DNA of 64,000 nucleotides from Scyliorhinus canicula (GCF_902713615.1 NC_052160.1:137682737-137746736), one strand, 5' to 3'. Positions 12,515 through 58,395 are shown, numbered from the stretch's first letter. Notes: generated by a model not told the origin, from the sequence alone. Numbers and translations are program-made.

Positions 12515-12844
12515 CTTCACAGACACAGACGGCTTCGATAGTGGTGAAAGCTGCAGTGGGAGAAACCATCACAGTGGGATGTCCACAGGCAGAAAGGTAC
12601 AAAAGAAACAATGTCATCTGGTGGTGCAAGGCAACTTGGGGAAGTGGGTGCGATCATATATCGAGCATTGATGGGCAGAAAGTCAGAAACGATTATCGAG
12701 GAACATCGATTACTGATACCAATGGCAAGATTTCAGTAACCATACAACACCTTGAAGAGAAAGATACTGGAACATACTGGTGTGGACCAGGAGATAAACA
12801 CACATTCAATGTTTTAGATATTGTATTGCTGAAGGTTTTCACAG
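12515..12844 (+). CDS. Gene A exon 2, V-type Ig domain D1
   Basis: Acceptor CCCCAACAG| and donor CAG|GTAAGA, 330 nt, phase 1-1. Translation includes VGC...IWWCKATWGSGC (CX7C)...DTGTYWCG. Confidence 0.93.
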
Positions 12845-13545
12845 GTAAGAATATTTCAGAAGATTGATTCTAGCGTTGATAATGTGGTTGGGCTGCAGTA
12901 ACATTGCTGCTGTGTGAGCTCAGACTACGAAAGGATTATCACAGCTCCTTATGTGCAAGTAAAGACCCCCCATCCTCCCATTTCTACCCATTTCCATCTC
13001 TAAACATACTTCCCCCTCACACATCGACAAACCTAACATCAAATTCCACCAATGCCTCTTTTTAAAAAATTATTTTAAAGTATGTGAGCGTTGCTGGCTA
13101 GGCCAGTATTTATTGCCCCTCCCTACGTATCCCTGAGAAGGTTGTGGTGAGCTGCCTTCTTGAAACTCTGCAGTCCACGTGGTGCAGGTACTATCAGATT
13201 GTTGTTAAGGCAGGGAGTTCAGGATTTTGATCCAGCGACATCGAAGGAACGGCGATGTAATTCCAGGTCAGGCTGCTGAGTGACTTGAAGAGGAGCACGC
13301 AAGTGGTGGTGTTGCCATACACCTGCTTCCCTTGTCCTTCTCGGTGAAAGGGGGAGCAAGTTTGGAAGGAGTGAGTCGCTGTGTGTAACCACAGTAGAAA
13401 TCTCTAATAGTTGCCAAATCAATAGTTGCCTTCTGCAACACAATGGCGTCAATTGGTTAAAACTAGTTGGAGGTTGTTTTATTGGAATTACGTTTAGCAT
13501 AATTTGCATTCAACAGCATTCATTTGCACTTATTTACAAAATAAG

Positions 13546-13930
13546 TCTACAAGTTTACAAAAGGTCTATAAAATTATGAGGGGCATAGACAGAGTGGACG
13601 GTCAGAGACTTTTTCCCAGGGTAGAGGGGTCAATTACTAGGGTATATAGGTTTAAGGTGCGAGTGGCAAGGTTTAGAGGAAATGTACGAGGCAAGTTTTT
13701 TACACAGAGGGTAGTGGGTGCCTGGAACTCGCTGCCGGAGGAGGTGGTGGAAGCAGGGACGATAGTGATGTTTAAGGGGCATCTTGACAATACAAGAATA
13801 GGATGGGAATAGAGGGATACGGAGCCCGGAAATGTAGAAGATTTTAGTTTAGATGGGCAGCATGGTCGGCACAGGCTTGGAGGGCTGAAGGGCTTATTCC
13901 TGTGCTGTACTTTTCTTTGTTCTTTGTTAT
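13546..13930 (+). mobile_element. CR1 LINE 3' end
   Basis: YKIMRGIDRVD..KFFTQRVVGAWNSLPEEVVEAG followed by the CR1 3' UTR and a TTCTTTG tail. Confidence 0.85.
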
Positions 13931-14094
13931 TTGATATCAATTGTGCTCAAAAGCATTCAGATATCATTTGCCATTGTAAATAGTGATCAACAGGCATCAT
14001 TATCATCAATTGCCAATAAACTGCATTGCTCAAACATTGCTGATTACTTAGTTGAAGCATTAGTTGAAAAATTATTTAGTTGAAGCATTATGCG

Positions 14095-14480
14095 AGCATA
14101 TGAAATAGGCAGGAAAGTTGGCCATTCGGCCCCTCGAACCTACTCTGCCATTCAATAAGACCATTGCTGCTCTGTTTGTATTTTGAATTCCACATTCCCA
14201 TCTACTCCCAATAACCACTGATACCCTTCCCTAACAAGAAACAATCTACCTCCACCTTAAAAATATTAAGTGTACCCCGTATTCCCCTGGCTGCTGAGGC
14301 AAAGAGTTCCAAAGTTGCACAACCCTCTGCGAGAAGCAGAATTCTCCTCATCGCTGTCCGAAAACGATGTCCCCCTTATTCTAAAACAGTTGCCCCCTAA
14401 CTCTGGACTCACCCACAAGAGGAAACATCCTTTCCACGCCCACTTTGTCATGACCACTCAGGATCATTGTATACTTCAAT
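14095..14480 (-). mobile_element. CR1 LINE 3' end, reversed
   Basis: Reverse complement of a CR1 C-terminus and 3' UTR (GGCCATTCGGCCC...CACAACCCTCTG). Confidence 0.7.
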
Positions 14481-15400
14481 CTAAACGTCAGTGGAAACAA
14501 ACACACACCGTCTCTCCAACAATCTGAAACCAAAACTGATCAGAGAGTTTATTCTCCCAGTTTCTGAATTACCATTGCTTCAATCACCTGAAAGAGGAGC
14601 TAGCTTGAGAAAAAGTAGATGCTGTTTCAACATATGTTTTTATAAGATAGTTTTATGTTTTTCTGCCAAATGTATGACTAATACAGCAGTGCCCCCATTA
14701 CCCCAGATTGTAGCAGCTTTCTTTCCCCACATGTAATTTTACCCTACCTCTTCTCAAAAATCCCACCTCACAGATTGCAACAGTTTTCATCACTCCTCCC
14801 TCTCTTACCCAACTCCTCCTCCCCCTTGCCCTGTCCCCTCCTTCTCCCTCTCTACCCCCCTCTCCTCTCTCCACCTCCACTGAGCCTTTCCCCCTCGTTC
14901 CCTCCTTCCCCTCCACCCATCCCACCCCCACTTGTCTCTCTGCCTCTCCGCCCCTCCACGCTCTGCTGAAGATATCCAGGCAACGTGGAGCAACAATGGC
15001 TGCACAAATGTGGTGTGTGCTCGGGTTGGGGAGGTCAGGGGTGAAGAGAGTCAACAGTGGCATCCCGGGCTCGAGGTTTGGCAGCATCTGGAGAGGCAGC
15101 AAAAGCTGGCCCGAAACCGGTTGTGGTGGGTGCAGGCCAGAGACTGGAGATGGTGGAGGAGGGAGTGGAGTGGAAGGGAAGAACCAGGGGCACCAAGACG
15201 CATACGTATCATCCTGCACCCTGCATGCTTTCTTCCGAAGATGACATAAATAAATTAAGAACCAATGGGAATCTGGTGATGCTCTCAAGCATACATTATG
15301 GGATGGGTTTTTTTCGACTAAATGAAAAAATACATAAATTCAGATATTATTTCAGTAATTAATTTCCTTGTGTTTTTTGATTTCGATTCTGAGCATATTT

Positions 15401-15565
15401 GATGCCTTTGAGCGTGGTTGATGCCTTTGAGCGTGGTTGATGCCTTTGAGCATGGTTGATGCCTTTGAGTGTGGTTGATGCCTTTGAGCGTGGTTGATGC
15501 CTTTGAGCGTGGTTGATGCCTTTGAGCGTGATTGATGCCTTTGAGCATTGTTGATGCCTTTGCGC
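15401..15565. repeat. 19-bp minisatellite GATGCCTTTGAGCGTGGTT, ~9 units, in gene A intron 2
   Basis: Units start at 15401, 15420, 15439, 15458, 15477, 15496, 15515, 15534 and 15553. Confidence 0.93.
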
Positions 15566-16570
15566 ACCTTTTGCCTTCTAGCTCCTTTGATTACATTTCA
15601 TTACAAAACATTGTTGTCCGCATAAAAAACACATTCCAAATTAAAACGCTTGTTGTCAAATGAGCGCTGGTCATTTTTGAGCGCAAAGAATAATGTCAAC
15701 ACTTTCTGGTAGGGTTTCAACCCAGTGGCTAAAATCTGAAATCATTCAAATCCATCCACTTACAAAAGGTTAAAATCAGACCCAATGGTTCTAGCAATGC
15801 AAACTAAAACTCAAACTGCTTAATGTGCAACCAGAACTATACTCCGTCCCTTCCCTGTGTAACAGGCCTGGTGTTGGATGTAATTCAAACACTAAGGAAC
15901 ATCGGCCCAGAGGTGGATACAGTTGGTTCTGGGCAATAGCATAAAATGGCTATTCACAAATTGCCAGCTCAATTCTTAAACTTCTTTTTTTCCCCCATTC
16001 GACTTTAACTGCAATACTCCAATCATGAACGTAGAGGAGCCCTACATAGTCCACTTTGAACTCAGTGTGCAACATCTTAGCTCATTCAAACCCATCCAAC
16101 TACATAGGGTTAAACTCAGGCCCAATGATTCTGGCGATGAAAACTGAAACTCCTTTTGACCTACAAGTAACAAACTCACATTGTTTGTATATTTTTAGTG
16201 TTTATCCAAAGCGATGCTCAGTTTGTGTCCAACAGGCTTGGAGTTGGGGTCCCTTCATCGACTTTGAAAATTCACCCGAACGTTCTGAGCAATTTCACTG
16301 CAGCTACAGAAATAGAAATGGTTCACTAAATGTAGACCCACACACCTATGAAATATTAAATTAAAGGTTTAGAACGAGCAGGAATTGAACGCAGGAGCTT
16401 TCAATGATTACAGTGCATTTTACACTATAATCCAGTCCGTACATTAAAAACAGAAAATAATTTTGACATTTTCAACATTTGGCTGGTTCATTATATTTTG
16501 AGCAATGAAAAGATGCTCAGTTTTTCAGCATTTGGAACTTTTATTGATTGTGTTTCTCATTTATCAACAG

Positions 16571-16897
16571 GTACATGGGAGCCAATTGTATCAGAGATCA
16601 GTGGTGTTGTGGGAAATGTCACCACTGTACCATGTCTGTACACGGAGGAGGAGAAATACTATAAGAAATTCCTGTGTAAAGTAACCTCTATAAATAAATG
16701 CACCATTATTGCCAGCTCTGATGGGGCTGTAAACAATCTGCAAAATGGGAGTGTTTCAATCACTATTAATAATTCTCATAATTTTACTGTTACCCTGGGC
16801 AACATTAATAAAGCTGATGAAGGAGAGTACTGGTGTGGAGCAGTGACAGTAAAGAACATAAAGATCATCCAGGTAAAACATCTGACAACTGCTGAAG
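16571..16897 (+). CDS. Gene A exon 3, V-type Ig domain D2
   Basis: Acceptor ATCAACAG| and donor GAAG|GTAAGG, 327 nt, phase 1-1. Translation includes VPCLY...KFLCKVTSINKC (CX7C)...DEGEYWCG. Confidence 0.93.
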
Positions 16898-17736
16898 GTA
16901 AGGGTCAGTATAAAATTATTATCATTCAATCAGTGTTGAATATAACTTACAAAACAATAACAATTGGTCAATGCTGAGTTCTTTATTTACACATTGCGGC
17001 CACCCTACTTCATCTCAACCTTTCAGCACATCCTTCTCTTACTTTCCCCCTCGCTAAGTTTAGCTCAATTTCCCCCGAAGAGCATCTATGAAATTTGTCA
17101 CAATTACACCTTGTGGTACAGGTAGAACGTCTCAGATCCGCTGACCAAAAAAACAACAGTGTCCGTCCACAAACCAGACATTTTTAGGATGCTCAAGGCA
17201 CCAATTTTAACTGAGTGAAATTTTTGAAAAAACACACTGGACAACTTGGCTAGGTGCCACGTTGGCACGATGTGGCTCCAGACTAGATACTGGCTTCACC
17301 ATCCACTCTATCCGCCTCTCCATATGATCCTTACACCAGCTGACCCGGCCTCACATGAACCACCCGTGGCCTGGACTGCCCACCCTGCACCCCAGCAAGA
17401 TCTGAAAGCCATCACTGGATTGGAGGTACTGTCCCTAGTTCCACATTTAACAAGTTCCAGCTTCTATCAGCTCTCTGGGTATAGTGTCCAAAACTTTCAC
17501 GAATACTACAAGAAAATATAAATGTTAAAAATAAATAGAGAGTTTGTGCGAATACCTCACAGATTATTGTCCTCCCAACACTATAAGCTCTTTGTGAAGG
17601 CCCCTCAGAATCTATTTTTTCCTGAGCTCAAAACACCCAGGTTCACTTTCCATAAGTACAGTACGTTGAAGGTAATAATGGTGGTGGTTGGCAATTATTC
17701 ATCAAATTATTCATTTATCTTTACTTCCAACAATAG

Positions 17737-17767
17737 GAAGATCAAGTATTTCCAACGATACCTCAAG
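17737..17767 (+). CDS. Gene A exon 4, 31-nt stalk micro-exon (GRSSISNDTS)
   Basis: AATAG| acceptor and AAG|GTAAGA donor, phase 1 to 2. This is the phase needed to join D2 to the TM exon. Paralog at 35435-35465. Confidence 0.75.
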
Positions 17768-18690
17768 GTAAGATTTTAATTTGCAACTTCTAAATATCAA
17801 TTTTGTGCCACCCTCATTGAAGCCACGGTTGTTAGATAATCCTGCTTTCCTCACAGGTCATGATGAGCAATGCAATGTTATTAAATTACTATAATCCACG
17901 CAACCACCATATTGATGCCATATATTTCCTCATAATTCTGCCATTGATTGTCTTCCCATTTAATACAAACATATCGAAGCCAGGGGGCGACGTTTTTCAG
18001 ACCTTGGCAGTAATCATTCGGTGCGATAATATGAGAGAGTGACATTAACACTTTCTGCTGATACGTTCCCTTACGGAACATCCGACACCCCAGCCCAGCG
18101 TTTATTCATTCACGGGATGTTGATGCTGCTGACAAACCCTCATTCATTGCCCATCCCTAATTGACCTTGATAAAATGTTGGTAAGCCACCACCTTTAACC
18201 CCTGCTGTCCATGTGATGTCAATACACCCACCTGTGTAGTTCGGTAGAGAGGGTTTTGACGCAGAAAAGGTGAAGGAATCATGATCCACTTACAGGTCAA
18301 GTTAGTGTGGTAGTTGAAAAGGTGAAGTTGAGGTGGTGCTGCTTTACCTGTTGTCCTTGTCTTTCCAACTGGTGATGGTCACAGGTTTGAAAGGTGTTAC
18401 TGAAGAAGCCTTAGAACACTGCTCTAATGCATCCTCAACAGAGAGATGCAGTCTCACCAGAACACAGCTCGTCCCTGCGCAATTCCTGTTAGAGATATTT
18501 TCCCCTGTGTACAAAGCCCAAAACTCCGAGGCATGACTACACTTTGAAAATCACCCCATAGCCTGTAAAAACTGTCAATGTGTTCAATATAATTTTCCAG
18601 AATTGTTGGGATGTTACTGATGGTCATTTTGCATAAACTGTGCGTTAATTTATTTTGTACTGTATTAATTATAATTCCTTGTTTAATCAG

Positions 18691-18797
18691 AGAGGTTCTG
18701 CTGAAGATATGGACTATATTCCGTTGGCTGCTCTTTGCGGCTCTGGCTGTTTGCTCCGCTTCAGTCACATTCTATGAACATTTTGCAAAAGGGCCAG
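18691..18797 (+). CDS. Gene A exon 5, transmembrane (REVLLKIWTIFRWLLFAALAVCSASVTFYEHFAKGP)
   Basis: TTGTTTAATCAG| acceptor and CAG|GTATAA donor, 107 nt, phase 2 to 1. Hydrophobic segment containing Arg. Confidence 0.8.
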
Positions 18798-19410
18798 GTA
18801 TAAAATATGAAATCTTTTTGCTCTAATATTTACAGATATTTAACTTCAGCCTAAAAACTCAGGCACTTGGAAAGTAGCCAAGAAAAACAACACATAATCC
18901 ACAAGAAATGAAGTTCTCTTCGTGAAAATGTAACAAGGGAGCCATTCGAGTGTGATAACAATGACCTTTGGGCTGAATTTTATGCTCGTCGACAGAAAGG
19001 ATAAAAATGTCAGTTCGTCAGGAGATTTTCATTTTTACGCGGGAGTGCAAAATGGGAAAAGTTGTGTAGACACTCAATGCAAAGCACTGTTTAATTAAAT
19101 TTTTATTTAAAATGCATACCTGTGTCCAATAGTGGCCTTGAACATGGGTAAGGGAGCATCAACAGTGCCCCTGGACCAGGCACAGTATGGTGCATTGTAT
19201 AACCTGGAACCCATGATGTGCCCCAGAGCTGTGGGCACCAGATGCAAAATAGGTTATTGCAAACAAACCTCAGCACTTACATCAGGATGTCTCCATCCAC
19301 ACTCTCACCTATTTTTTCGCCATGTATCGCTTGAAGTATTTCACTTACAGAAAGAAGGTCAATTCCTCTGTTTTCTTTATTACGATTGATTAAATTTATT
19401 TGTTATTCAG

Positions 19411-19430
19411 TTCTGCAGGCCAGCAAATGA
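19411..19430 (+). CDS. Gene A terminal coding exon (VLQASK*); an alternative acceptor at 19419 would give a 27-aa tail ending at 19501
   Basis: First AG after a T-rich tract. The same VLQASK* reading occurs in gene B. AATAAA lies ~220 nt downstream. Confidence 0.55.
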
Positions 19431-19648
19431 GGGGTTCTGTGGAAACATCAGCCAGAGAACATCAATGGGGTCAGAGAGAGCTGCATTCGAAGACCGGCTA
19501 GAAGGTTGACTAATACCTACACGAATGTCCAGAATATTTTCACCTTGCTTTTATAAGTTACTTTACCGTTTTGCAGTATTTTTATTCTTTATGACAATCT
19601 GAAAATCTTTGTAAAGTCTTGAGAAACTATGTGAACTGCTTTCATTAT

Positions 19649-19654
19649 AATAAA
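19649..19654 (+). terminator. Polyadenylation signal AATAAA, gene A
   Basis: Conserved at the homologous position in gene B (37599-37604). Confidence 0.6.
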
Positions 19655-20508
19655 AACAACTGGATGATAACATTTCTTGATGTTTTTGATATTAAGGGGC
19701 AGTGGATGCCGGAACACGATCCAAATTTGAGGAGGAGATAGATAGGTTTTTAATTAGTGGTGGAATGAAGGATTATGGCAATGGGCAGGATGGTGGAGAT
19801 GGGGCCTGGACGAGATCAGCCCAGGTTTTTAGGGGAGGTGATGGTATAGTGGTATTGTCACAAGACTAGTAATCCAGAGACCTAGAGGTCTGGGATCCTG
19901 GGTTCCCACCACGGCAAATGGTGAAATTTGAATTCATCTGGAATGAAAAGTATAATGATGACCATGAAGCCATTGCCGATTGTCATAAAAACCCATCTGG
20001 TTCACTAAGGTCCTTCGGGGAAGGGAATCTGCCGTCCTTACCTGGTCTGGCCTACATGTGACTCCGGACCCACACAACAATGCTTCGCCCCTCAGTTCAA
20101 GGGCAATTAGGGATGGGTAACAAATGATGGCCCAGCCCAGCGACGCCCACATCCAAAGAGCGAATAAGAAAAAGTATTGAATGGTGGAGGGGTTGAATTG
20201 CCGACCCTTGCTCTTGGTTCCTATAGTCTTATGTTTGTGTCCTAATAAGTCAAATATGATTTCAGAAACTTTTATATGAACCCAGAATACATATTTAATG
20301 ATATCAATGCCTTCGTTGGGAATGACACACCTTGCTTGCAGAGGGGAAAAAATAGAATTTGGACTTTTTTTTAACATTGCTTTCCTTGTAAAGCAAGAGA
20401 AATGGGAGCTTACATTTGGTGCACTTATTCTATCATCCTCACATTAATTTTATATTGCAATTATCAGTAAACAGCCTTCCTTCTTTAAGCTTGGGGGAGT
20501 GATTCGGG

Positions 20509-20850
20509 ATGGCACGGTCACACAGTGGTTAGCACTGCTGCCTCACACCTCCAGGGGCCCGGCTTCAATTCCGGCCTCGAGTGGCGGTCTGTGTGGAGTC
20601 TGCATGTCCTCCCCGTGTCTGCGTGGGTTTCCTCCGGGTGCTCCGGTTTCCTCCCACAGTCCAAAGATGTGCAGGTTAGGTGGATTGGCCGTGCTAAATT
20701 GCCCCTTAGAGTCCAAACGGTTAGGTGAGGTTACTGGGTTATGGGGATCGGGTGGAGGCGTGGCCTTAAGTAGGGTGCTGTTTCCAAGAACCGGTGCAGA
20801 CTCAATGGGCCGAGTGGCCTCCTTCTGTACTGTAGGGATTCTGTGATTCA
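20509..20850 (+). mobile_element. V-SINE
   Basis: tRNA-like head, central domain and tail. It is an inverted homolog of 29047-29398 and 56942-57294. Confidence 0.8.
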
Positions 20851-21640
20851 ACGACCTTGTTGAATCCTGTGAGAGGCCTCTCGTGAGATTTGCGACGCTT
20901 GTAATGCCTCACGAGAACCAACGGAATCTCACAAGACGTCGCGATCTGGATCTCGCTCTCGCTGCGCGTGACCCAGATCGGTATATTTAAATGAACCATT
21001 CGGTGTTCGCTGGATTCTCCCAGCACTCGGGATGTAACGGGCGCTCCTTGGAGATCTTCGTCAGGATGCCATTTGGAGCTGGTTTCCACAAACGTGGATC
21101 AGGGATCACAGACTCAGGGTGGGGTGGGGGGCGGGGGGGGGGTTGCTCCCAGCCATTAGAGACCCCTGGGTGGTCGGGCACAGGGCAAGGTGATACCGTG
21201 GGACTCCCGATGGCAGCCTGGCACCTTAGCCCTGCCACCCTGGCACCTTGGCAATGCCATCTTGCTGCTGCCTGGGTGCCAGGCTGGCAGTACCATCGTG
21301 TCCAGGTAGCAGATTGACACTGATGGCGATCAGGCCCAGTGGAGCCTTTACAGGTGGAGGAGGGGTGACAGGGTGTTCCCAATGACCTCCTCAAAGTTGG
21401 GGTCAGAGGGGTCAAAAACAGGGCGGGAGGACTGAAAGTGTGCAGGGGGGGGGGGGGGGAGAGAAGGATTGGGTCAGTATTTCAAAATGCGAGGTGCATT
21501 TCCTGGCGGTGAGTAGAAGCAGGAAATCGCTCAAAGTGCGGCCTCAGGGGGGAGTCACTCCCCTCGGCCAAAAGAACAGCAAAGTGCCGTTCAATATTGG
21601 GGTGTTTTTCAGCTCTGCAGCCACCCAGAAACACCCTGCT
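20850..21640. mobile_element. MITE-like non-autonomous DNA element
   Basis: Inverted homolog of 28200-29040. Same family core as 10540-11362. Confidence 0.6.
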
Positions 21641-22074
21641 AAACGCGTGCCAACCAGACATAAACATTGTCTGCTTGAATTGCCCTGAGGTTTCTCATCA
21701 ACCCTCTTGGGATTAAGCTCAAATCTAGTTGGATTTGTAGCTTCGGATGAGCTGTGGGGTTAGTGAAGTGCCCAATTTAACTCTGCAATCCTCGGAAGAA
21801 TTGGACTTCACAGGCTGTTGGGGGACAGGGCTTACACTCTGCAAATTTATATCACTGCATGTGTGTCCTGATTGTACATGCTTCACCTGAACCAATTGAC
21901 TGTTGTTTCTACAACCCTTTGGTTAGATAGTTCTGTTTTTGGTACATTTAGAATCCTTGGCTTAAATATTCCACCCATTCCTGACGATGGGATATTCCGG
22001 TCCTGCCAATGGTGACCACCCGTGGTGCAATCCCGAGTGGCAGGAGATGCCAGGAAGGCAAGACACCACATTGA

Positions 22075-23092: not shown

Positions 23093-23149
23093 AATATCTT
23101 TACTTAATGTCGGAATTTGGCAATGGTCAGCCAACAAGAGATCATTTCC

Positions 23150-23326: not shown

Positions 23327-23366
23327 ATGATTATTACTGCGTTGCTGTTCCTCACTTTGATATCAA
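23327..23366 (+). CDS. Gene B exon 1, signal peptide MIITALLFLTLIS
   Basis: AGCATGA start, 40 nt, donor AA|GTAAGA. Confidence 0.83.
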
Positions 23367-24292: not shown

Positions 24293-25207
24293 TTTTAGCA
24301 ATATATATATATATATATATATTTAGCAGTATATATATATATATATTTAGCAGTATATATATATATTTAGCAGTATATATATATATATATTTAGCAGTAT
24401 ATATATATATATTTAGCAGTATACATATATATATATTTAGCAGTATATATATATATTTAGCAGTATATATATATTTAGCAGTATATATATATATTTAGCA
24501 GTATATATATATATTTAGCAGTATATATATATATTTAGCAGTATATATATATTTAGCAGTATATATATATATATTTAGCAGTATATATATATATTTAGCA
24601 GTATATATATATATTTAGCAGTATATATATATATTTAGCAGTATATATATATTTAGCAGTATATATATATATATATTTAGCAGTATATATATATATATAT
24701 TTAGCAGTATATATATATATATATTTAGCAGTATATATATATATTTAGCAGTATATATATAATTATATTTAGCAGTATACATATATATTTAGCAGTATAT
24801 ATATATTTAGCAGTATATATATATATTTAGCAGTATATATATATATATTTAGCAGTATATATATATTTANNNNNNNNNNNNNNNNNNNNNNNNNNNNNNN
24901 NNNNNNNNNNNNNNNNNNNNNNNNNNNNNNNNNNNNNNNNNNNNNNNNNNNNNNNNNNNNNNNNNNNNNNNNNNNNNNNNNNNNNNNNNNNNNNNNNNNN
25001 NNNNNTATATTTAGCAGTATATACATATATATATATTTAGCAGTATATATATATATTTAGCAGTATATATATATATATATTTAGCAGTATATATATATAT
25101 ATTTAGCAGTATATATATATATTTAGCAGTATATATATATATATTTAGCAGTATATATATATATATTTAGCAGTATATATATATATTTAGCAGTATATAT
25201 ATATATT
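24293..25207. repeat. TTTAGCAG(TA)n minisatellite containing/adjoining assembly gaps (N at 24870-25005 and 25208-25343)
   Basis: Directly visible ~20-26 bp units. One further unit lies at 26221-26245. Confidence 0.95.
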
Positions 25208-25343
25208 NNNNNNNNNNNNNNNNNNNNNNNNNNNNNNNNNNNNNNNNNNNNNNNNNNNNNNNNNNNNNNNNNNNNNNNNNNNNNNNNNNNNNNNNNNNNN
25301 NNNNNNNNNNNNNNNNNNNNNNNNNNNNNNNNNNNNNNNNNNN

Positions 25344-28069: not shown

Positions 28070-29046
28070 TTGATTGCAGAGTTAAGATGGACACTCCACT
28101 AACCCCACAGCTCATCCGAAGCTACAAATCCAACTAGATTTGAGCTTCATCCCAAGAGGGTTGATGAGAAACCTCAGGGCAATTCAAGCAGACAATATTT
28201 ATGTCTGGTTGGCACGCGTTTAGCAGGGTGTTTCTGGGTGGCTGCAGAGCTGAAAAACACCCCAATATTGAACGGCACTTTGCTGTTCTTTTGGCCGAGG
28301 GGAGTGACTCCCCCCTGAGGCTGCACTTTGAGCGATTTCCTGCTTCTGCTCACCGGCAGGAAATGCACCTCGCATTTTGAAATACTGACCCAATCCTTCT
28401 GCCCCCCCCCCCTTGCACACTTTCAGCCCTCCCCCCCCCCCTCCTTTTCACCCTTCTGACCCCAACCTTGGGGAGGTCATTGGGAACACCCTGTCACCCC
28501 TCCTCCACCTGGTAAGGCTCCACTGGGCCTGATCGCCATCAGTGTCAATCTGCTACCTGGACACGATGGTACTGCCAGCCTGGCACCCAGGCAGCGGCAA
28601 GATGGCACTGCCAAGGTGCCAGGGTGGGAGGGTCAAGGTGACAGGCTGGCACAGGGAGTTCCAGGGTATCACCCTGCCCTGCCCCCAACCACCCAGGGGT
28701 CTCTAATGGCTGGGAGCAGCCACCCACCCCCCCCTCCCCTCCCCCCCCCCCCCCCCCCCCCCCCACCCCCACCACCCTGTTTGGGTCTGTTTTGCCTGAT
28801 CCATGTTTCTGGAAACCAGCTCTAAATGGCGTCCTGACGAAGATCTCCCAGGAGTGACCGTTACATCCCAAGTGCTGGGAGACTCCGGCGATTGCCTAAT
28901 GGCTAATTTAAATATACCGATCTGGGTCACGCGCAGCGAGAGCGAGATCCAGATCGCGACGTCTCGTGAGATTCCGTTGTTTCCAGCGTCGCAAATCTCA
29001 CGAGGGGCCTCTCGCAGGATTCAACGGCCTTTTTGGGCCCAACGAA

Positions 29047-29398
29047 GCCGTTGAATCACAGAAGCCCTACAGTGCAGAGGGAGGCCATTCGGCCCATTGA
29101 CTCTGCACCGGTTCTTGGAAACAGCACCCTACTTAGGGCCACGCCTCCACCCTATCCCCACAACCCAGTATCTCACCTAACCTTTTGGACACTAAGGGGC
29201 AATGTAGCACGGCCAATCCACCTAATCTGCACATCTTTGGACTGTGGGAGGGAACCGGAGCACCCGAAGGAAACCCACGCAGACACGGGGAGAATGTGGC
29301 AAACTCCACAGAGACAGTCACCCGAGGCCGGAATTGAACCCGAGCCCCTGGAGATGTGAGGCAGCAGTGCTAACCACTGTGCGGCTGTGCCATCCCGA
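29047..29398 (-). mobile_element. V-SINE
   Basis: Reverse complement of a full SINE, homologous to 56942-57294. Confidence 0.8.
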
Positions 29399-29459
29399 AT
29401 CACTCCCCCAAGCTTAAAGAAGCTGATAATTGCAATATAAAGTTAATGTGAGGATGATT

Positions 29460-30180: not shown

Positions 30181-30510
30181 CTTCACAGACACAGACGGCT
30201 CCGATAGTGATGAGAGCTGCAGTGGGAGAAACCATCACAGTGGGATGTCTACAGGGAGAAAGGTACAAAGGAAACTCTGCAATCTGGTGGTGCAGGACAA
30301 CTTCGGGAACTCGGTGCAATCATATATCGAGCATTGATGGGCACAAAGTCAGAAATGATTATCGAGGAACATCAATTGCTAATACAAATGGCAAGATTTC
30401 AGTAACCATACGACACCTTCAAGAGATAGAAACAGGAGCATACTGCTGTGGACTAGAAGATACCGGCTCATTCAATATTTCAGATGTTATATTGCTGAAG
30501 GTTTTCACAG
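30181..30510 (+). CDS. Gene B exon 2, Ig domain D1
   Basis: CACCCAACAG| acceptor and CAG|GTAAGA donor, 330 nt, open. IWWCRTTSGTRC; the F strand reads ETGAYCCG. Confidence 0.92.
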
Positions 30511-34122: not shown

Positions 34123-34449
34123 GTACATGGGAGCCAATTGTATCAGAGATCAGTGGTGTTGTGGGAAATGTCGCCACTGTACCATGTCTGTACACGGAGG
34201 AGGAGAATTACTATAAGAAATTCCTGTGTAAAGTAACCTCTATAAATAAATGCACCATTATTGCCAGCTCTGATGGGGCTGTAACCAATCTGCAAAATGG
34301 GAGTGTTTCAATCACTATTAATAATTCTCATAATTTTGCTGTTACCCTGGGCAACATTAATAAAGCTGATGAAGGAGAGTACTGGTGTGGAGCAGTGACA
34401 GTAAAGAACATAAAGATCGTCCAGGTAAAACATCTGACAACTGCTGAAG
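34123..34449 (+). CDS. Gene B exon 3, Ig domain D2
   Basis: ATCAACAG| acceptor and GAAG|GTAAGG donor, 327 nt. Five nucleotide differences from gene A D2. Confidence 0.93.
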
Positions 34450-35465: not shown

Positions 35466-36389
35466 GTAAGATTTTAAATTGCAACTTCTAAATATCAGTT
35501 TTGTGCCACCCTCATTGAAGCCACGGTTGTTAGATAATCCTGCTTTCCTCACAGGTCATGATGAGCAATGCAATGTTATTAAATTACTATAATCCACGCA
35601 ACCACCATATTGATGCCATATATTTCCTCATAATTCTGCCATTGATTGTCTTCCCATTTAATACACACATATCGAAGCCAGGGAGTGACGTTTTTCAGAC
35701 CTTGGCAGTAATCATTCGGTGCGATAATATGAGAGAGTGACATTAACACTTTCTGCTGATTCCTTCCCTTACGGAACATCCGACACCCCAGCCCAGCGTT
35801 TATTCATTCACGAGATGTCGATGCTGCTGAAAAACCCTCATTCATTGCCCATCCCTCGTTGCCCTTGATAAAGTATTGGTAAGCCACCACCTTGAACCAC
35901 TGCTGTCCATGTGATGTCGATACACCCACCGGTGTTGTTCGGTGGAGAGGGTTTTGACGCAGAAAAGGTGAAGGAATCATGATCCACTTACAGGTCAAGT
36001 TAGTGTGGTAGTTAAGAAGGTGAATTTGAGGTGGTGCTGCTTTACCTGTTGGCCTTGTCTTTCCAACTGGTGATGGTCACAGGTTTGGAAGGTGTTACTG
36101 GAGAAGCCTTCGAAAGTTGCTGTCATGCATCCTCAACAGAGAGATGCAGTCTCACCAGAACACAGCTCGTCTCTGCGCAATTCCTGTTAGAGATATTTTC
36201 CCTGTGTGTACAAAGCCCAAAACTCCGAGGCGTGACTACACTTTGAAAATCACCCCATAGCTCGGACAAACTGTCACTCCGTTCATTATAATTTTGCAGA
36301 ATTGTTTTGACATTATTGATGGTCATGTTGCATAAACTGTGAGTTAAATTATTTTGTACTGTATTAATTATAATTCCTTGTTTAATCAG

Positions 36390-36496
36390 AGAGGTTCTGC
36401 TGAAGATATGGACTATATTCCGTTGGCTGCTCTTTGCGGCTATGGCTGTTTGCTCCGCTTCAGTCACATGCTACGCACATTTTGCAAAAGGGCCAG
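36390..36496 (+). CDS. Gene B exon 5, transmembrane (REVLLKIWTIFRWLLFAAMAVCSASVTCYAHFAKGP)
   Basis: 107 nt with the same splice sites as gene A. Confidence 0.8.
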
Positions 36497-49804: not shown

Positions 49805-51445
49805 CCGGGGCATTGCCGTGTCCGGGGCATTGCCGTATCCGGGGCATTGCCGTATCCGGGGCATTGTCGTGTCCGGGGCATTGCCGTGTCTGGGGCATTG
49901 TCGTGTCCGGGGCATTGCCGTGTCCGGGGCATTGCCGTTTCCGGGGCATTGCCATGTCCGGGGCATTGCCGTGTCCGGGGCATTGCCGTATTTGGGGCAT
50001 TGCCATTTTTGGGGCATTGCCGTTTCCGGGGCATTGCCGTGTCCGGGGCATTGCCGTGTCCGGGGCATTGTCGTGTCCGGGGCATTGTCGTGTCCGGGGG
50101 CATTGCCGTGTCCGGGACATTGCCGTGTCCGGGGCATTGCCGTGTCCGGGGCATTGCCGTGTCCGGGGCATTGCCGTGTCCGGGGCATTGCCGTTTCCGG
50201 TGCAATGTCGTTTCCGGGGCATTGCCGTTTCCAGTGCATTGCCGTGTCCGGGGCATTGCCATTTCCGGGGCATTGCCATTTCCGGGGCATTGCCGTGTCC
50301 GGGGCATTGCCGTTTCTGGGGCATTGCCGTGTCCGGGGCATTGCCGTGTCCGGGGCATTGCCGTGTCCGGGGCATTACCGTGTCCGGGGCATTGCCGTGT
50401 CCGGGGCATTACCGTGTCCGGGGCATTGCCGTTTCCGGGGCATTACCGTGTCCGGGGCATTGCCGTTTCCGGTGCATTGCCGTGTCCGGGGCATTGCCGT
50501 TTCTGGGGCATTGCTGTGTCCGGGGCATTGCCGTGTCCGGGGCATTACCGTGTCCGGGGGCATTGCCGTGTCCGGGGCATTGCCGTGTCCGGGGCATTGC
50601 CGTGTCCGGGGCATTGCCGTGTCCGGGGCATTGCCATTTCCGGGGCATTGCCGTTTCCGGGGCGTTGCCGTGTCCGGGGCATTGCCGTGTCCGGGGCATT
50701 GCCGTGTCCGGGGCATTGCCATTTCCGGGGCATTGCCGTTTTTGGGGCATTGCCGTTTCCGGGGCTTTGCCGTGTCCGGGGCATTGCCGTGTCCGGGGCA
50801 TTGCCGTTTCCGGGGCTTTGCCGTGTCCGGGGCATTGCCGTGTCCGGGGCATTGCCGTGTCCGGGGCATTGCCGTGTCCGGGGCATTGCTGTGTCCGGGG
50901 CATTGCCATGTCCGGGGCATTGCCGTTTCCGGGGCATTGCCGTTTCCGGGGCATTGTCGTTTCCGGGGCATTGCCGTGTCCGGGGCATTGCTGTGTCCGG
51001 GGCATTGCCATGTCCGGGGCATTGCCGTGTCTGGGGCATTACCGTGTCCGGGGCATTGCCGTGTCCGGGGCATTGCCATGTCCGGGGCATTGCCGTGTCC
51101 GGGGCATTGCCGTGTCCGGGGCATTGCCATGTCCGGGGCATTGCCGTGTCCGGGGCATTGCCGTGTCCGGGGCATTGCCGTTTCCGGGACATTGTCGTTT
51201 CCGGGGCATTGCCGTGTCCGGGGCATTACCGTGTCCGGGGCATTGCTGTTTCCGGGACATTGTCGTTTCCGGGACATTGTCGTTTCCGGGGCATTGCCGT
51301 GTCCGGGGCATTACCGTGTCCGGGGCATTGCCGTTTCTGGGGCATTGCCGTTTCCGGGGCATTGCCGTTTCCGGTGCATTGCCGTGTCCGGGGCATTGCC
51401 GTTTCCGGGACATTGTCGTTTCCGGGGCATTGCCGTGTCCGGGCC
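49805..51445. repeat. 17-bp GC-rich minisatellite CCGGGGCATTGCCGT(G/T)T, ~95 units, in gene C intron 1
   Basis: Directly visible. The 17-bp period explains the long repetitive ORFs in all six frames. Confidence 0.96.
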
Positions 51446-53060: not shown

Positions 53061-53714
53061 TGGCCGGGATTCCCCGGCCCTGCGGCGGGTCGGAGAATCC
53101 CAGGGGGGGAGGCGCGAATCCCGACCCACCGCCCCGACGCTGGCTGCCCTATTCTCCGGCGCCGTTTTTCAGGGGCCGGCGGGATTCCCGCCACGCCGGT
53201 CAGGGGGCCATTGACAGGCCCCTCCCCCAGTGATTCTCTGGGCCCCGATGGGCCAGGTGGCCGTAAAGTTTTCCCAGTCCTGCCGGCGTGAATTACTCAC
53301 CTCACGCATAGCGGGACCTGGCAGGTAAGTGTGCAGGGGCGGTTCTGGGGGCAGGGTGGTTCTGACCCCAGGGGGGGGGGGGCCCCACGGTGGCTTGGCC
53401 CGCGATCGGGGCCTACCGATCTGCGGGCGGGCTGGTTCCGTGGGGGTCCTCTTTCCTCCGGGCCCCTGTCAGGCTCCGCCATATTGCCCGGGGGCCGGCA
53501 CGGAGAAGGGAATCCCCGCGCATGCGCGGAAATACGCCAGCCATTCTGCGCATGCGCAAACTCCGGCTGGAGCTGTGGGGCGACTCCGGTGGCAGCCTAG
53601 CCCCCCAGAAAGGTGAGGATTTTCTCACTTTCGGGGGCTGCTGACATCGGAGTTGTTGGCGCCGGTTTTCCCGCCGGTGTGGGGACATAGCCCCATTTTC
53701 AGAGAATCCCGCCC
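53061..53714. mobile_element. MITE with GGCCGGGATTC / GAGAATCCCGCCC inverted ends
   Basis: Imperfect terminal inverted repeats and a GC-rich non-coding interior. Confidence 0.7.
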
Positions 53715-53856
53715 ACTGACTCTCTCACTCCCATTAACACACACACACAATCTCACTGCCTCACACACACACACATCTCTCATGTGCACACACTTTCTTT
53801 CTCACACACACCACACACCACACACACTCACTGGCACACTTCCACACAAACACAAG

Positions 53857-53992
53857 GGGTGGGATTCTCCGTCCGTGGGATCCTCCGCTTCGCCGGCAGC
53901 GCACTCACGCCCCCGTGATTTCCCCATGGCGTGGGGGGGTGTCCACAACGGGAAACCCCATTGGCCGGCTGCCGGGACGGAGAATCCCGCTC
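53857..53992. mobile_element. Short MITE within a (CA)n-rich tract (53720-54135)
   Basis: Ends GGGTGGGATTCTCCGTCC / GGACGGAGAATCCCGCTC are inverted repeats. Confidence 0.72.
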
Positions 53993-54174
53993 AAACTCTC
54001 ACTTCCTGACATAAGCACACTCTCGCTCCTTTACGCACACACTTATCCACACACACTCTCACTTCCTGACACACACACACACACTCTCACACACGCACCC
54101 CTCCCACTTCCTGACACACACACACACACACCATCGTCATCCTCTTCCTCCCAAACTCCAACCTCCATTCCGAG

Positions 54175-54401
54175 TGATGCACGATCAATTGTACAAAGAC
54201 TCAGATTGGGTACAACTGTGGCTTTATTGCAGTAAGATGCGTGGCCTCCTACAGCAGCTGGCGAAATGGCAGCTGCATAGAGGACACACATATTTATACT
54301 CCTCTTCCTGGGCGGAGCCAGCAGGCAGGGGCTACCAGCGAACCTGTAATACAGGTCCTACCTTACATCCCCTAACACAGGTGTAACAATGGTTCACCAC
54401 A
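54175..54401 (-). mobile_element. Solo LTR related to the Gypsy LTR at 39066
   Basis: TG...CA with a 5-bp direct repeat CCGAG. Termini TGATGCACGATCAATT / TTCACCACA are the reverse complement of termini resembling those of the 39066-39330 LTR. Confidence 0.8.
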
Positions 54402-55309
54402 CCGAGGCCTTGCAATGAGCCTCTCCTCCCCTGCATCTCACAATCTGTGTCTCCTCCCCGGGGCCTCCTCACTCTGCTCCCCATTCCCGTTTGGAGGTGC
54501 CGGAGTGGTATTCCGGTGTGCTCCAGCATCATTACATCACTAACGGAAGAGGAAGATGATAAGGGAGTTGTGGGATTCTTGAATTTTAAATAGGAGTATT
54601 AAATACAAAGTGTGAGGAGTTATGTTAACCCTTCACTTCTCACTGGTTAGGCCTCTGGGGTTAGGTACTTGTTCAACTCTGGGCAACACACTTGAGGGAG
54701 GAGGTCAAGCCCCTGGCGAGGGCACAGGGCAGATTTACCAGGATGATACCAGGGATGTGGCAGTTTGGTTATGTGGGCAGATTGGAGAAATTGGGATTAT
54801 TGTCCTTAGAGCAGAAAAGATTAAAGGGAAATTTAATAAATGTATTGAAATTGAGGAAGGGTCTTAAGCAGCAGGTGGAGAGTAATTATTTCCTCTGGCT
54901 GGTGGATTGGTAACAAGAGATCATAGAGTTAAAATAGTTGGGAGAAAAGCGAGTGGATAAATGAGAAGTTATTTCACACATTAGGCTGTTATTATCTGGA
55001 ATACACCAACTGGAATAGTCATGGAATAAGATTCATAATTCATAAGATATAAGAACAGAATTAGGCTATTTGGCCCATCGAGTCTGCTCCACCATTCTAT
55101 CATGGCTGTCATGTCCCTCATCTGCTATCTACAATGTTACAGACCAAGAGCGAGATTGCAGAATCAGCCGGAGCATCTCCTCCCTGGAACACACGACCTC
55201 GGGGCCGGAGTGGGGAATTTACCCTCCCGAGCCCAACACCCTCAATGTGATCGTGGCTGATCCCATCCTGGCCTCAATTCCACCGTCCTGCCTGTTCTCC
55301 ATAACCCTT

Positions 55310-55583
55310 TGATGTGACCATCAATTCACACAAAACCAGGAGTAGAGGTAAACTGTGGTTTTAATCAACTAGAACAGTGCCTGCCTGCAACTGGTCTGCT
55401 ACTGAGAGCCGCTTACAGGGCGACTGCTCTTTATACCTCCCCTCAGGGGGTGGAGCCCACACAGGCCCCAACATGCTACATTATAGGTAATACCTTACAA
55501 TGGTCCATAGGTGGAGCCCACATGGGCAACAGCATAATACAGTAAGACACATGGTGAATTATTCCTGCAATACATTCACCACA
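55310..55583 (-). mobile_element. Solo LTR of the same group, inserted in a reversed CR1 3' end (55030-55705)
   Basis: TG...CA with a 5-bp direct repeat CCCTT on both sides. Confidence 0.8.
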
Positions 55584-55704
55584 CCCTTCAAACCCATTAC
55601 CAATTAAAAATCTGTCTAACCCCTCCTTAAATTTACTCCAGTATCTGCATCCACCGCACTCTGGGGTAGCGAATTCCACAGATTCACAACCCTTTGGGAG
55701 AAGT

Positions 55705-56935
55705 AGGGTGGAATTCTCCCCCCCCCCCCCCCCCCCCCCGCCACGCCGCCACGGCACCCGCACGCGATTCTCCCACCCCCCCCCCCCCCAAACCGGCATG
55801 GCGAGATTCACGGCTGGCCGCTGGGAGAATCGGCGCTCACCGTTTGTAGCGAGCGAGCGGCGATTCTCCGGCCCGGATGGGCCGAGCGGCTGCCCCAACA
55901 TGACAGGTTCCCGCCGCCGCCGTCCTCACCTGGTCGCTGCCGGCGGGAACAGCGCGGGAACACTGGGGGGGGCAACCTGTGGGGGGGGGGGGGGTCCTCA
56001 AAAGGGGTCTGGCCCACGATTGGTACCCACCAATCGGCGCGCCAGATCTCTGAAGGAGGACCTCCTTTCCTCTGCCGCCCCGCAAGATCCATCCGACATC
56101 TTCTTGCGGGGCAGACGCGGGGAGGTTGCACTCGCACATGCGCGGGTGACGTAATTTACACGGCGCAGCCGCGTCATTTATGCGTGCAGGGCCTTGGCAT
56201 CGCGTAAATGACGCTGTGCTGCTCCTCGCCCCCCCGGGAGCGGGAGAATAGGGGGCTGGGAGCCGCCAGGAAATGCACCTCGCATTTTGAAATACTGGTC
56301 CGATCTTTCTGCCCCCGCCCTGCACACTTTCAGCCTTCCCCCCCCCCCCCCCCCACTCCTTTTCACCCTTCTAACCCCAACGTTGGGGAGGTCATTGGAA
56401 ACACCCTGTCACCCCTCCTCCACCTGGTAAGGCTCCACTGGGCCTGATCGCCATCAGTGTCAATCTGCTACCTGGACACGCTGGTACTGCCAGCCTGGCA
56501 CCCAGGCAGCGGCAAGATGGCATTGCCAAGGTGCCAGGGTGGGAGGGTCAAGGTGACAGGCTAGCAGAGGGAGTTCCAGGGTATCACCCTGCCCTGCCCC
56601 CAACCACCCAGGGGTCTCTAATGGCTGGGAGCAGCCACCCACCCCCCCCCCCCCCCCCGCCCCCACCACCCCACCCCGGGTCTGTTTTGCCTGATCCACG
56701 TTTGTGGAAACCAGCTCTAAATGGCGTCCTGACGAAGATCTCCCAGGAGTGGCCGTTACATCCCGAGTGCTGGGAGAATCCGGCAATCGCCTAATGGCTC
56801 ATTTAAATATACCGATCTGGGTCACGCGCAGCGAGAGCGAGATCCAGATCGCGACGTCTCGTGAGATTCCGTTGTTTCCAGCGTCGTAAATCTCACGAGG
56901 GGCCTCTCGCAGGATTCAACGGCCTTTTTGGGCCC
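55705..56935. mobile_element. Adjacent MITE-like elements
   Basis: GGAATTCTCC-type end. 56270-56930 matches 28340-29040. Confidence 0.55.
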
Positions 56936-56941
56936 AACAAG

Positions 56942-57294
56942 GCCGCTGAATCACAGAAGCCCTACAGTGCAGAGGGAGGCCATTCGGCCCATTGACTCTG
57001 CACCGGTTCTTGGAAACAGCACCCTACTTAAGGCCACGCCTCCACCTTATCCCCACAACCCAGTAATCTCACCTTACCTTTTGGACACTAAGGGGCAATT
57101 TAGCACGGCCAATCCACCTAATCTGCACATCTTTGGACTGTGGGAGGAAACCGGAGCACCCGGAGGAAACCCTCGCAGACACGGGTCGAATGGGGCAAAC
57201 TCCACAGAGACAGTCACCAGAGGCCGGAATTGAACCCGAGCCCCTGGAGATGTGAGGCAGCAGTGCTAACCACTGTGCGGCTGTGCCATCCCGA
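56942..57294 (-). mobile_element. V-SINE (paralog of 29047-29398)
   Basis: Near-identical sequence and flanks. Confidence 0.8.
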
Positions 57295-58065
57295 ATCACT
57301 CCCCCAAGCTTAAAGAAGCTGATAATTACAATATAAAGTTAATGTGAGGATGATTTTTGAATTTTAAATAAGAGTAATAAATGCAAAGTGAGGAGTTATG
57401 TTAACCCTTCACTACTCACTGGTTAGGTACTGTGTTCAACTCTGGGCAACACACTTGAGGGATGAGATCAAGCCCCTGGCGAGGGCACAGGACAGATTTA
57501 CCAGGATGATACCAGGGATGTGGCAGTTTGGATTTGTGGGCAGATTGGAGACATTGGGATTATTCTCCTTAGAGCAGAAAAGATTAAAGGGAAAAAAGTA
57601 TTGAAATTGAGGAAGGGTCTTCTGCAGCAAGTGGAGAGTAATTATTTCCTACGGCTGGTGGATTGGTAACAAGAGATCATAGAGTTAAAATAGTTGGGAG
57701 AAAAAACAGTGGGTAAATGAGGAGACGTTATTTCACACATTAGGCTGTTATCATCTGGAAAACACCACCTGGAATAATCATGGAATGAGATTCCAGAGGA
57801 ACTTTCCAAAGGCAGATAGACATACATTTGAAGGGGACCAATGTGCAGGGTTTCGGGGGGGAGCTGGGGTGTGGGATTAAATTGGACAATAAATTTTCCA
57901 GGAGCTGGCACAGACATGACGGGCCGAATGGCCTCCTTCTCTGCTTTAAGGTTCTTGATTCCAGTCCCACTCAGGATTTGTGTGTGTCCCCTTGTGAAAG
58001 GATTGTCTAAAATTCATTGTTGGGATATTTCCAGCTTTCCTAAAACTTAATGTTTCCCCCAACAG

Positions 58066-58395
58066 CTTCACAGACACGGACGGCTCCGATAGTGATGAGA
58101 GCTGCAGTGGGAGAAACCATCACAGTGGGATGTCCACAGGCAGAAAGGTACAAAAGAAACTATGTCATCTGGTGGTGCAAGGTAATTTCAGGAACTCGGT
58201 GCGATCAGATATCGAGCATTGATGGACAGACAGTCAGAAACGATTATCGAGGAACATCGATTACTGATACCAATGGCAAGATATCAGTAACCATACGACA
58301 ACTTGAAGAGAAAGATACAGGAACATACTGGTGTGGGCCACATGATAATGGTGTAACCCATATTTCAGATGTTATATTGCTGAAGGTTTTCACAG
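58066..58395 (+). CDS. Gene C exon 2, Ig domain D1
   Basis: CCCCCAACAG| acceptor and CAG|GTAAGA donor, 330 nt, open. IWWCKVISGTRC..DTGTYWCG. Confidence 0.92.

Follow-up and report, generated by a model that had tools for sequence, protein, structure and literature searches.

A divergent loop island within the distal immunoglobulin domain of tandem pIgR-like receptor genes in the catshark Scyliorhinus canicula

When the outer domain of a tandemly repeated receptor differs more between gene copies than the introns beside it, has the exon been driven ahead by selection or have its surroundings been made alike? The question is raised by a cluster of immunoglobulin-domain genes in the catshark Scyliorhinus canicula, contained in a stretch of 64,000 nt (GCF_902713615.1 NC_052160.1:137682737-137746736; hereafter the window). 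Variable outer domains are familiar from the multigene innate immune receptor families of mammals and bony fishes, and distal domains are hypervariable in the MDIR (modular domain immune-type receptor), DICP, NITR and NILT families. The pattern is ordinary and expected for receptors of this type; it is met here in a cartilaginous fish, for whose receptor family our literature search returned no description. A preliminary description of the locus had read an exon diverging faster than its intron as the outcome of an arms race at the binding face of the distal domain, D1. Here we examine that reading by comparing the copies with one another, with their flanking DNA and with relatives from a second catshark, S. 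torazame. The account that we favour, with some though far from complete confidence, is that the family is kept alike by gene conversion, yet retains D1 loop patches that are old and have been shuffled, receptor diversity probably being favoured. The locus would then offer a clean example of concerted evolution and the retention of diversity side by side within one 330-nt exon.

Architecture and identity of the receptor family

Three tandem paralogs, A, B and C, lie in the window and carry the RefSeq name 'polymeric immunoglobulin receptor-like' (pIgR-like). A and B share a layout of leader, distal V-set domain (D1), proximal V-set domain (D2), arginine-bearing transmembrane segment and short tail, and their D1 and D2 are identical to those of S. 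canicula XP_038675786-788 (Table 1). Gene C is represented within the window by its leader and D1 only, with no third D2 found there by tblastn, and its D1 was absent among the RefSeq proteins retrieved. The D1 exons of A, B and C are 330 nt each, bounded by AG...GT, in phase 1-1 and free of N, and a protein search for transcript fragments found no D1-length proteins.

Table 1 Coordinates of the receptor gene features in the window
Feature	Coordinates	Strand	Details
Gene A leader exon	8221..8260	+	ATG 8221, phase-1 donor; start of XP_038675786/7 (P0167/P0153)
Gene A D1 exon	12515..12844	+	330 nt, V-set; Pfam E=2e-11; identical to P0167 D1
Hypervariable island in A D1	12584..12823	+	Exon positions 70-309, CDR1 to CDR3; A-B change-point analysis
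Gene A D2 exon	16571..16897	+	327 nt, second V-set domain; 5 nt differences from B D2
Gene A transmembrane exon	18689..18796	+	Arg in span; bounds approximate (tblastn)
Gene B leader exon	23327..23366	+	ATG 23327; start of P0162
TA-rich minisatellite with two assembly gaps	24310..25343	.	Gene B intron 1
Gene B D1 exon	30181..30510	+	Identical to D1 of XP_038675788 (P0162)
Hypervariable island in B D1	30250..30474	+	From B-C comparison
Gene B D2 exon	34123..34449	+	
Gene B transmembrane exon	36388..36495	+	Arg in span; translation matches P0162 transmembrane segment
Gene C leader exon	49030..49069	+	
Gene C D1 exon	58066..58395	+	

Both domains score well above the Pfam V-set (PF07686) cut-off of 26 bits, at 39-47 bits for D1 of A, B and C and 43.7 bits for D2 of A and B. 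Matches to PDB sequences were to pIgR (the best, E=2e-25 summed over repeated domains) and CD300, and an AF2 model (pLDDT 90) found its best Foldseek folds in TREM2, CD300c, CD300a, TLT-1, NKp44, CD300lf and pIgR D1/D2 (TM 0.69-0.79), placing CD300/TREM/pIgR/NKp44-type V domains as the closest solved folds. A, B and C all have Cys22, Cys37, Cys45 and Cys89, which are also near-invariant among 51 homologous domains drawn from a protein library that includes sharks, rays, a chimaera and bony vertebrates; all three genes accordingly carry, besides the B-F pair, the cysteines of the second, C-C' disulfide of this domain type. In the D-type paralog P0156, position 45 is a phenylalanine.

The transmembrane segments of S. 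canicula A, B and D contain an arginine, and the layout of A and B would suit a receptor of the activating type. Long tails with I/V-x-Y-x-x-L/V motifs occur in S. torazame P0159 and in members from Mustelus, Carcharodon and Pristiophorus; judged from these protein sequences, the two forms, one with transmembrane arginine and short tail and the other with an ITIM-like tail, point to a paired activating/inhibitory family. The RefSeq name is an automatic one. pIgR supplies the best PDB sequence matches and shares the domain type, but a true pIgR combines several immunoglobulin domains that bind polymeric Ig, an uncharged transmembrane segment and a long transcytosis tail, where the catshark proteins have two immunoglobulin domains, a transmembrane arginine and a tail of ~15 residues, and true pIgR identity is rejected by this architecture. 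Mammalian CD300 (CMRF35-like; CD300lf, CD300a and CD300c) provides the top structure and sequence matches, has the same V-set fold with the extra C-C' disulfide, and likewise forms a cluster of activating (charged transmembrane) and inhibitory (ITIM-like tail) members, the catshark inhibitory form being P0159. CD300 proteins differ in having one immunoglobulin domain rather than two V-set domains and are only 23-32% identical, and we liken the two by domain, not as orthologs. Fish multigene activating/inhibitory receptors with CD300/TREM/pIgR-like V domains, in the context of MDIR, DICP, NITR and NILT, have been described (PMC3031540); the catshark family resembles skate and zebrafish MDIR and teleost DICP, NITR and NILT in these respects and is a possible relative.

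Two assembly gaps, 24870-25005 and 25208-25343, occur within or beside a TA-rich minisatellite (24310-25206) between the leader and D1 exons of gene B, and together with several minisatellites in the window they might suggest that the copies, or the differences between them, stem from mis-assembly near gaps or from collapsed haplotypes. We give this almost no credence: no D1 exon comes closer than 5 kb to the gaps, which belong to the TA-rich repeat, touch no exon and are crossed by no reading frame, and the comparisons below are independent of them; flanks and leaders differ from one locus to the next; RefSeq proteins, an independent source, have D1 and D2 identical to those of A and B; and the assembly of another species again contains A-like and B-like types. 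The gaps, which lie in gene B intron 1, were rejected as a source of D1 divergence.

A divergent island between CDR1 and CDR3

The divergence first reported for D1 is real. A and B differ at exactly 40 of 330 nt and in 36 codons (32 nonsynonymous, 4 synonymous); A and C differ at 24 of 109 residues, close to the ~25 of 110 given before; and the intron just downstream of the A and B exons, put at ~5% over ~150 nt, differs at 7 of 153 positions (4.6%). All eight of the peptide motifs quoted in the preliminary description were recovered on the + strand where it had placed them, and two of its segments, RNDYRGTSI and NGKISVTI, are indeed invariant in A, B and C; they are not invariant in the S. 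torazame paralogs. The introns flanking D1 differ by ~4%. Sites variable in the three-way comparison number 57/330 in the exon versus 19/300 in the flanks (p=1.5e-5), and B-C differences 41/330 versus 75/1960 (p=5e-9), an excess far beyond chance. D1 is hypervariable relative both to its own introns and to D2.

Within the domain, changes concentrate in the CC' and FG loops, as had been proposed; both are the hottest patches, FG being the most variable element of D1 and CC' strongly variable too, with the Cys37-Cys45 pair present. These loops were assigned from DSSP elements, V-set topology and the CD300lf paper (PMC6166816), not from measured distances. In the homologous domain of CD300lf, the CC' and FG (CDR3) loops form the ligand-binding cleft (PMC6166816), and it is this region that corresponds to the most variable patches of catshark D1.

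Change-point analysis delimits the divergence to an island running from exon position 70 to 294-309. Divergence between A and B is 15.4% inside the island versus 4.6% outside, and between B and C 17.8% versus 3.7% (2290 aligned nt, 2ΔlnL=56); A and C are set apart by a 38-nt CDR3 patch (12786-12823) that is 45% divergent. The island falls in the same CDR1-CDR3 stretch in 3/3 pairs. Synonymous differences between the three D1 pairs are also confined to codons 23-100, with island pS values of 0.108, 0.131 and 0.189 versus flank divergences of 0.044, 0.030 and 0.038 (p=0.044, 0.011 and 4.7e-5) and pN/pS values of 1.49, 0.93 and 0.87. The island is therefore 3-5 times as divergent as the flanks at synonymous and nonsynonymous sites alike. 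Because silent sites are raised with the rest, the island is better read as an old, patch-shuffled segment lying in recently homogenised DNA than as proven fast adaptive evolution, and the contrast between exon and intron, taken earlier as the signature of an arms race, as a product of homogenised flanks. More generally, an excess of exon over intron divergence cannot on its own be read as positive selection, and synonymous sites must be checked.

Codon tests and readings based on selection or drift

The proposal that D1 is under diversifying selection finds only partial support: over the whole D1 exon of A, B and C, no test gave ω significantly above 1. NG86 estimates of dN/dS for the three pairs were 1.96, 1.32 and 0.96 (Fisher p of at least 0.13). 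Maximum likelihood on the three D1 sequences, a sample of low power, gave ω=1.53 under M0 (p=0.2 against 1) and 2Δl=4.55 for M1a versus M2a (p=0.10), with M2a placing 11.6% of sites at ω=6.6.

That class of fast sites is one of several features expected had the cassette been homogenised or duplicated ~4% divergence ago and the exon then outrun its introns by positive selection on point mutations. The A-B nonsynonymous divergence of 34.5/252, about threefold that of the flanks (13/297; p=7e-5), a ratio of 15 nonsynonymous to 1 synonymous change on the A lineage, and an enrichment of nonsynonymous changes in loops (P=0.0008) point the same way. We nevertheless hold such an arms race to be quite improbable. 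The likelihood-ratio tests are not significant and island synonymous sites have risen equally; loops of the B type are shared with S. torazame, which makes a large part of the divergence old; D1 has not accelerated among recent B-type duplicates, the four B-type genes having 5 variable positions in D1 versus 6 in D2; and the short CDR3 patch separating A from C resembles block replacement, not stepwise substitution. The loop enrichment was itself rejected as evidence of selection, since synonymous changes are raised in loops too and the nonsynonymous-to-synonymous ratios of loops (23.5:4.5) and framework (25:6) are about equal; with these ratios alike, selection on the loops is suggested by their position rather than measured. 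What stands of the original reading is the hypervariability of D1, hottest in CC' and FG; its two arguments for selection fail as stated. Nor does the possibility raised with it, that B is a dead copy, find support: we reject it on account of a complete RefSeq protein model for B and the presence of the B type in four intact genes, three besides B itself.

The codon counts are compatible with neutral drift at ω≈1, under which a lack of stop codons would be only marginally improbable (P=0.059). A second alternative is accordingly a relaxed D1 in a redundant family, where the island would mark the ends of conversion tracts or a divergent donor and diversity would not be selected. Values of ω no different from 1, the similar ratios in loops and framework, the mosaic structure described below, and the behaviour of C—in no retrieved protein model, with 14 nonsynonymous to 5 synonymous changes on its lineage, near the neutral expectation—are all compatible with it. 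We consider it unlikely, however; against it stand the recurrence of the island at one CDR1-CDR3 stretch in three pairs, the open frames of every D1 copy seen (seven in S. canicula and three in S. torazame), the near-invariance of Trp36, the cysteines of the framework and the D-x-G-x-Y-x-C motif across the 51 domains, and the retention of B-type loops through speciation.

Shared loop types and mosaic exons

The D1 and D2 domains tell different histories. In the D1 tree, S. canicula B groups with S. torazame P0152 (St_2) with support of 95/95; D2 instead sorts the sequences by species, and its tree rejects groupings of the D1 type (p-AU 0.021 and 0.013). Species monophyly of D1 was not formally rejected (p-AU 0.11-0.13). 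Amino-acid differences in D1 and D2, respectively, number 32 and 5 between the S. canicula proteins A and B, and 29 and 1 between the S. torazame proteins St2 and St3. Since B-type loops are common to the second species, much of the D1 divergence is old. In C, the D1 exon is pieced together from an A-like and a B-like part, with a max-chi-square breakpoint at about exon position 285 (permutation P=0.004). Noncoding identity varies along the cluster, from 76-84% near the leader exons to 95.6% in the D2 block and 92% and 85% in later blocks. Incongruent D1 and D2 trees, a mosaic exon and noncoding identities spanning 76-96% are together the pattern of concerted evolution with an escaped segment.

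We propose that the family evolves in concert, through gene conversion or recent segmental copying, which would have raised identity to ~96% in the D1 flanks, at either end of the D1 exon and in the D2 region, and left other noncoding DNA at 76-85%. The island from CDR1 to CDR3 (codons 23-100) would have escaped homogenisation or been overwritten patchwise by divergent donors; its loop types would predate the split of S. canicula and S. torazame, and the island is in its turn a mosaic of patches swapped among paralogs. Selection probably keeps or favours differing versions of the putative CC'-FG ligand cleft, in which case homogenised D1 variants would not be retained. Should lipid or microbial ligands prove to differ among the D1 types, the cluster would lend itself to studying how the diversification of paired receptors began.

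In MHC, KIR and CD33-related Siglec genes, recombination or conversion has homogenised the DNA on either side of a divergent binding exon; lineages are trans-specific, motifs form a patchwork, and dN>dS is significant at binding sites. By analogy, the catshark cluster appears to share with them an old, highly divergent island in a ligand-binding exon set between homogenised flanks. It differs in that those cases mostly involve alleles or primate paralogs with significant dN>dS, whereas the catshark sequences are paralogs whose dN/dS is not significant.

Loop motifs recur across the catshark paralogs in differing combinations. A bolder form of our proposal, which we entertain only tentatively, is a germline repertoire in which micro-gene-conversion moves short CDR1, CC' and CDR3 cassettes from one tandem paralog to another and the remainder of each gene is homogenised. 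If true, a ligand-binding cleft would owe to it a combinatorial diversity that persists across species, and a lineage ranking among the oldest of jawed vertebrates would have an innate, germline counterpart to receptor diversification by conversion. Among the four B-type genes, 4/5 D1 variants are states already present in other types.

Divergence and substructure of the D1 exons

The tandem 'pIgR-like' receptor genes A, B and C encode a distal Ig domain (D1), followed in A and B by a proximal one (D2). All D1 motifs quoted in the preliminary description were located on the forward strand, its A–B counts were reproduced exactly (40 of 330 nt, with 36 differing codons comprising 32 nonsynonymous and 4 synonymous-only) and an A–C recount gave 24 residue differences in 109. 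The intron flanks of D1 are far closer between paralogs than the exon itself, differing at 13 of 297 positions for A–B (4.4%), 9 of 299 in the near flanks for A–C (3.0%) and, for B–C, 71 of 1790 upstream and 4 of 170 downstream (3.8% overall). Sites variable in the three-way comparison number 57/330 in the exon versus 19/300 in the flanks (P = 1.5e-5), and B–C differences 41/330 versus 75/1960 (P = 5e-9); the excess divergence of the D1 exon is real and statistically strong.

Change-point analysis delimits a hypervariable island that starts at exon position 70, just past Cys22 at the onset of CDR1, and ends at position 294–309, at the close of CDR3; exon nt 1–69 and the last ~20–35 nt show intron-like divergence. 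B–C divergence is 17.8% within the island and 3.7% outside, A–B 15.4% and 4.6%, and A–C shows one 38-nt CDR3 patch at 45% over a 4.6% background. Synonymous D1 differences are all confined to codons 23–100, and island pS exceeds flank divergence for A–B (0.108 versus 0.044, P = 0.044; pN/pS 1.49), A–C (0.131 versus 0.030, P = 0.011; pN/pS 0.93) and B–C (0.189 versus 0.038, P = 4.7e-5; pN/pS 0.87). With pS elevated and pN/pS at 0.87–1.49, the island therefore appears to be older or drawn from divergent donors, and not just the product of faster protein evolution. The exon–intron contrast, previously read as a sign of selection, is better explained by an old island of shuffled patches whose flanks have been homogenised.

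Mosaic history and tests of selection

Noncoding identity among the paralogs is 76–84% near the leader exons, 96% near D1 and D2, and 92% then 85% further 3′. The D1 protein tree joins S. canicula B-type sequences to S. torazame P0152 (support 95/95); in the D2 tree each species clusters on its own, the groupings of the D1 types being rejected (p-AU 0.021 and 0.013). These trees point to old D1 types and a homogenised D2. Amino-acid differences in D1/D2 are 32/5 for ScA–ScB (S. canicula), 15/8 for ScB–St2 and 29/1 for St2–St3 (S. torazame). The D1 of C is itself mosaic, A-like in the exon centre and B-like from exon position ~285 on into the downstream intron (max-chi-square breakpoint, permutation P = 0.004), and loop motifs reappear in varied combinations across paralogs. 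Between A and B, D2 differs at 5 nt (5 nonsynonymous, 0 synonymous; too few to interpret) and its flanking introns at 47/1182.

Pairwise NG86 dN/dS for D1 is 1.96 (A–B), 1.32 (A–C) and 0.96 (B–C), none significant. A purpose-written maximum-likelihood codon analysis used A, B and C as taxa, for which there is one unrooted tree, so that recombination cannot alter the topology; it gave ω = 1.53 under M0 (P = 0.2 versus ω = 1) and 2Δl = 4.55 for M1a versus M2a (P = 0.10). DSSP-defined loops hold an excess of nonsynonymous changes (P = 0.0008), as an arms race through point substitution might predict, but also of synonymous ones, leaving N:S about equal (23.5:4.5 in loops, 25:6 elsewhere). Among four recent B-type genes, moreover, 5 positions vary in D1 and 6 in D2, and 4/5 of the D1 variants are states found in other types, which is consistent with micro-conversion and argues against steady D1 acceleration; we regard a true arms race of this kind as quite improbable. 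Changes per lineage (A 15N:1S, B 19.5N:4.5S, C 14N:5S) show a synonymous share that is not significantly low (P = 0.12), and the probability of zero stop codons under neutrality is 0.059. A neutral mosaic with relaxed constraint seems unlikely to us. The suggestion that B might be a dead copy was not upheld. The proposal of diversifying selection on D1 is partly supported, in that D1 emerges as hypervariable and probably ligand-binding, but dN/dS lends no support to positive selection. We favour, as moderately probable, selection that preserves or favours binding-cleft diversity amid gene conversion. Families of paired innate receptors (CD300, KIR, Siglec, NITR/DICP, MDIR) usually evolve in this mode; it is seen here in a shark family of which the literature searched yielded no description.

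The putative binding face

The FG/CDR3 loop is the D1 hotspot: all 8 of its positions vary, with roughly three states apiece. The EF, CC′ and BC loops come next. In CD300lf, the ligand cleft lies between the CC′ and CDR3 loops (PMC6166816). A Cys37–Cys45 pair in catshark D1 has the spacing of CD300lf Cys36–Cys44, the disulfide that forms the floor of the ligand cleft (PMC6166816), and it is reasonable to infer that the variable patches line a putative ligand site. In B-type D1, as in S. torazame P0152, the residue that precedes the F-strand cysteine is Cys rather than Trp (YCCG, codons 88–89); the matching Trp lines the CD300lf cleft (PMC6166816). D-type D1 (P0156, residue 45) has Phe in place of the C′ cysteine.

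Gene models and repeats

A domain search identified D1 and D2 as V-set domains, with pIgR and CD300 the closest solved sequences; an AlphaFold model of D1 (pLDDT 90) best matched TREM2, CD300c, CD300a, TLT-1, NKp44, CD300lf and pIgR. Library search and cluster look-ups equate A with XP_038675786/7 and B with XP_038675788, both named 'polymeric immunoglobulin receptor-like' in RefSeq. Their sequences specify a transmembrane (TM) Arg and a short tail, an activating-receptor layout; this architecture differs from that of pIgR, and we reject that identity despite the name. Some relatives from S. torazame and other sharks have ITIM-like tails. Besides these genes, the S. canicula cluster contains three further ones of B type, with D1 1–3 residues from that of B, and one D-type gene.

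Isoform X2 of A (P0153) skips the TM exon for an alternative last exon and is predicted to be soluble. RefSeq 'isoforms' X2 and X3 of B (P0155, P0164) mismatch B's own exons: the TM segment of X2 is identical to an A-type exon, from which B's own differs at 3/36 residues, and X3 additionally has a different D2. Within the window the A-type TM exon precedes B, so the exons used in these isoforms must stem from a downstream paralog; the models are read-through or chimeric. No retrieved S. canicula protein contains the D1 of C, which may represent a cassette exon that is skipped or used alternatively. P0156 (gene span 32 kb) shares the leader peptide of C but has a D-type D1, and Mustelus asterias proteins show a D1-D1-D2 layout.

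Coordinates of features in the window
Feature	Position	Strand	Details
D1 exon, A	12515–12844	+	330 nt, AG/GT bounded, phase 1-1, no N
D1 exon, B	30181–30510	+	330 nt, AG/GT bounded, phase 1-1, no N
D1 exon, C	58066–58395	+	330 nt, AG/GT bounded, phase 1-1, no N
D1 codons 88–89, B	30442–30447		
Other exon starts, A	leader 8221; D2 16571; TM ~18689		
Other exon starts, B	leader 23327 (ATG); D2 34123; stalk 35434; TM 36388		
Leader exon, C	49030–49069		D2, stalk, TM exon beyond window
D2 compared, A vs B	16571–16897 vs 34123–34449		
TM segment compared, A vs B	18689–18796 vs 36388–36495		
Alternative last exon, A	19409–19498		
Assembly gaps	24870–25005; 25208–25343		136 N each
Minisatellite, intron 1 of B	24310–25206		TA-rich, unit 20–22 bp
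Large minisatellites	3690–5109; 44089–44458; 49804–51443		G-rich 25–26 bp x55; CTG-rich array; 17 bp x96, 91% match
Inverted repeat, A-downstream vs B intron 1	20432–21790 vs 28072–29458		
Inverted repeat, A-downstream vs C intron 1	20480–21509 vs 56263–57318		
SINE-like copies	3314–3641; 12016–12342; 20512–20849; 29067–29382 (-); 44568–44908; 56948–57278 (-)		
Direct repeat, window ends	4–1613 vs 61702–63299		1.6 kb, 76% identity

Both assembly gaps lie in or border the intron 1 minisatellite between the leader and D1 exons of B; no reading frame spans them and no comparison draws on gap sequence. The 17-bp-unit array lies within intron 1 of C. About 1.3 kb directly downstream of A recurs inverted in intron 1 of B and C, 5′ of their D1 exons (85–92% identity). 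One of six copies of a ~320-bp SINE-like dispersed repeat (76–83% identity) sits immediately upstream of the onset of A homology to B and C.
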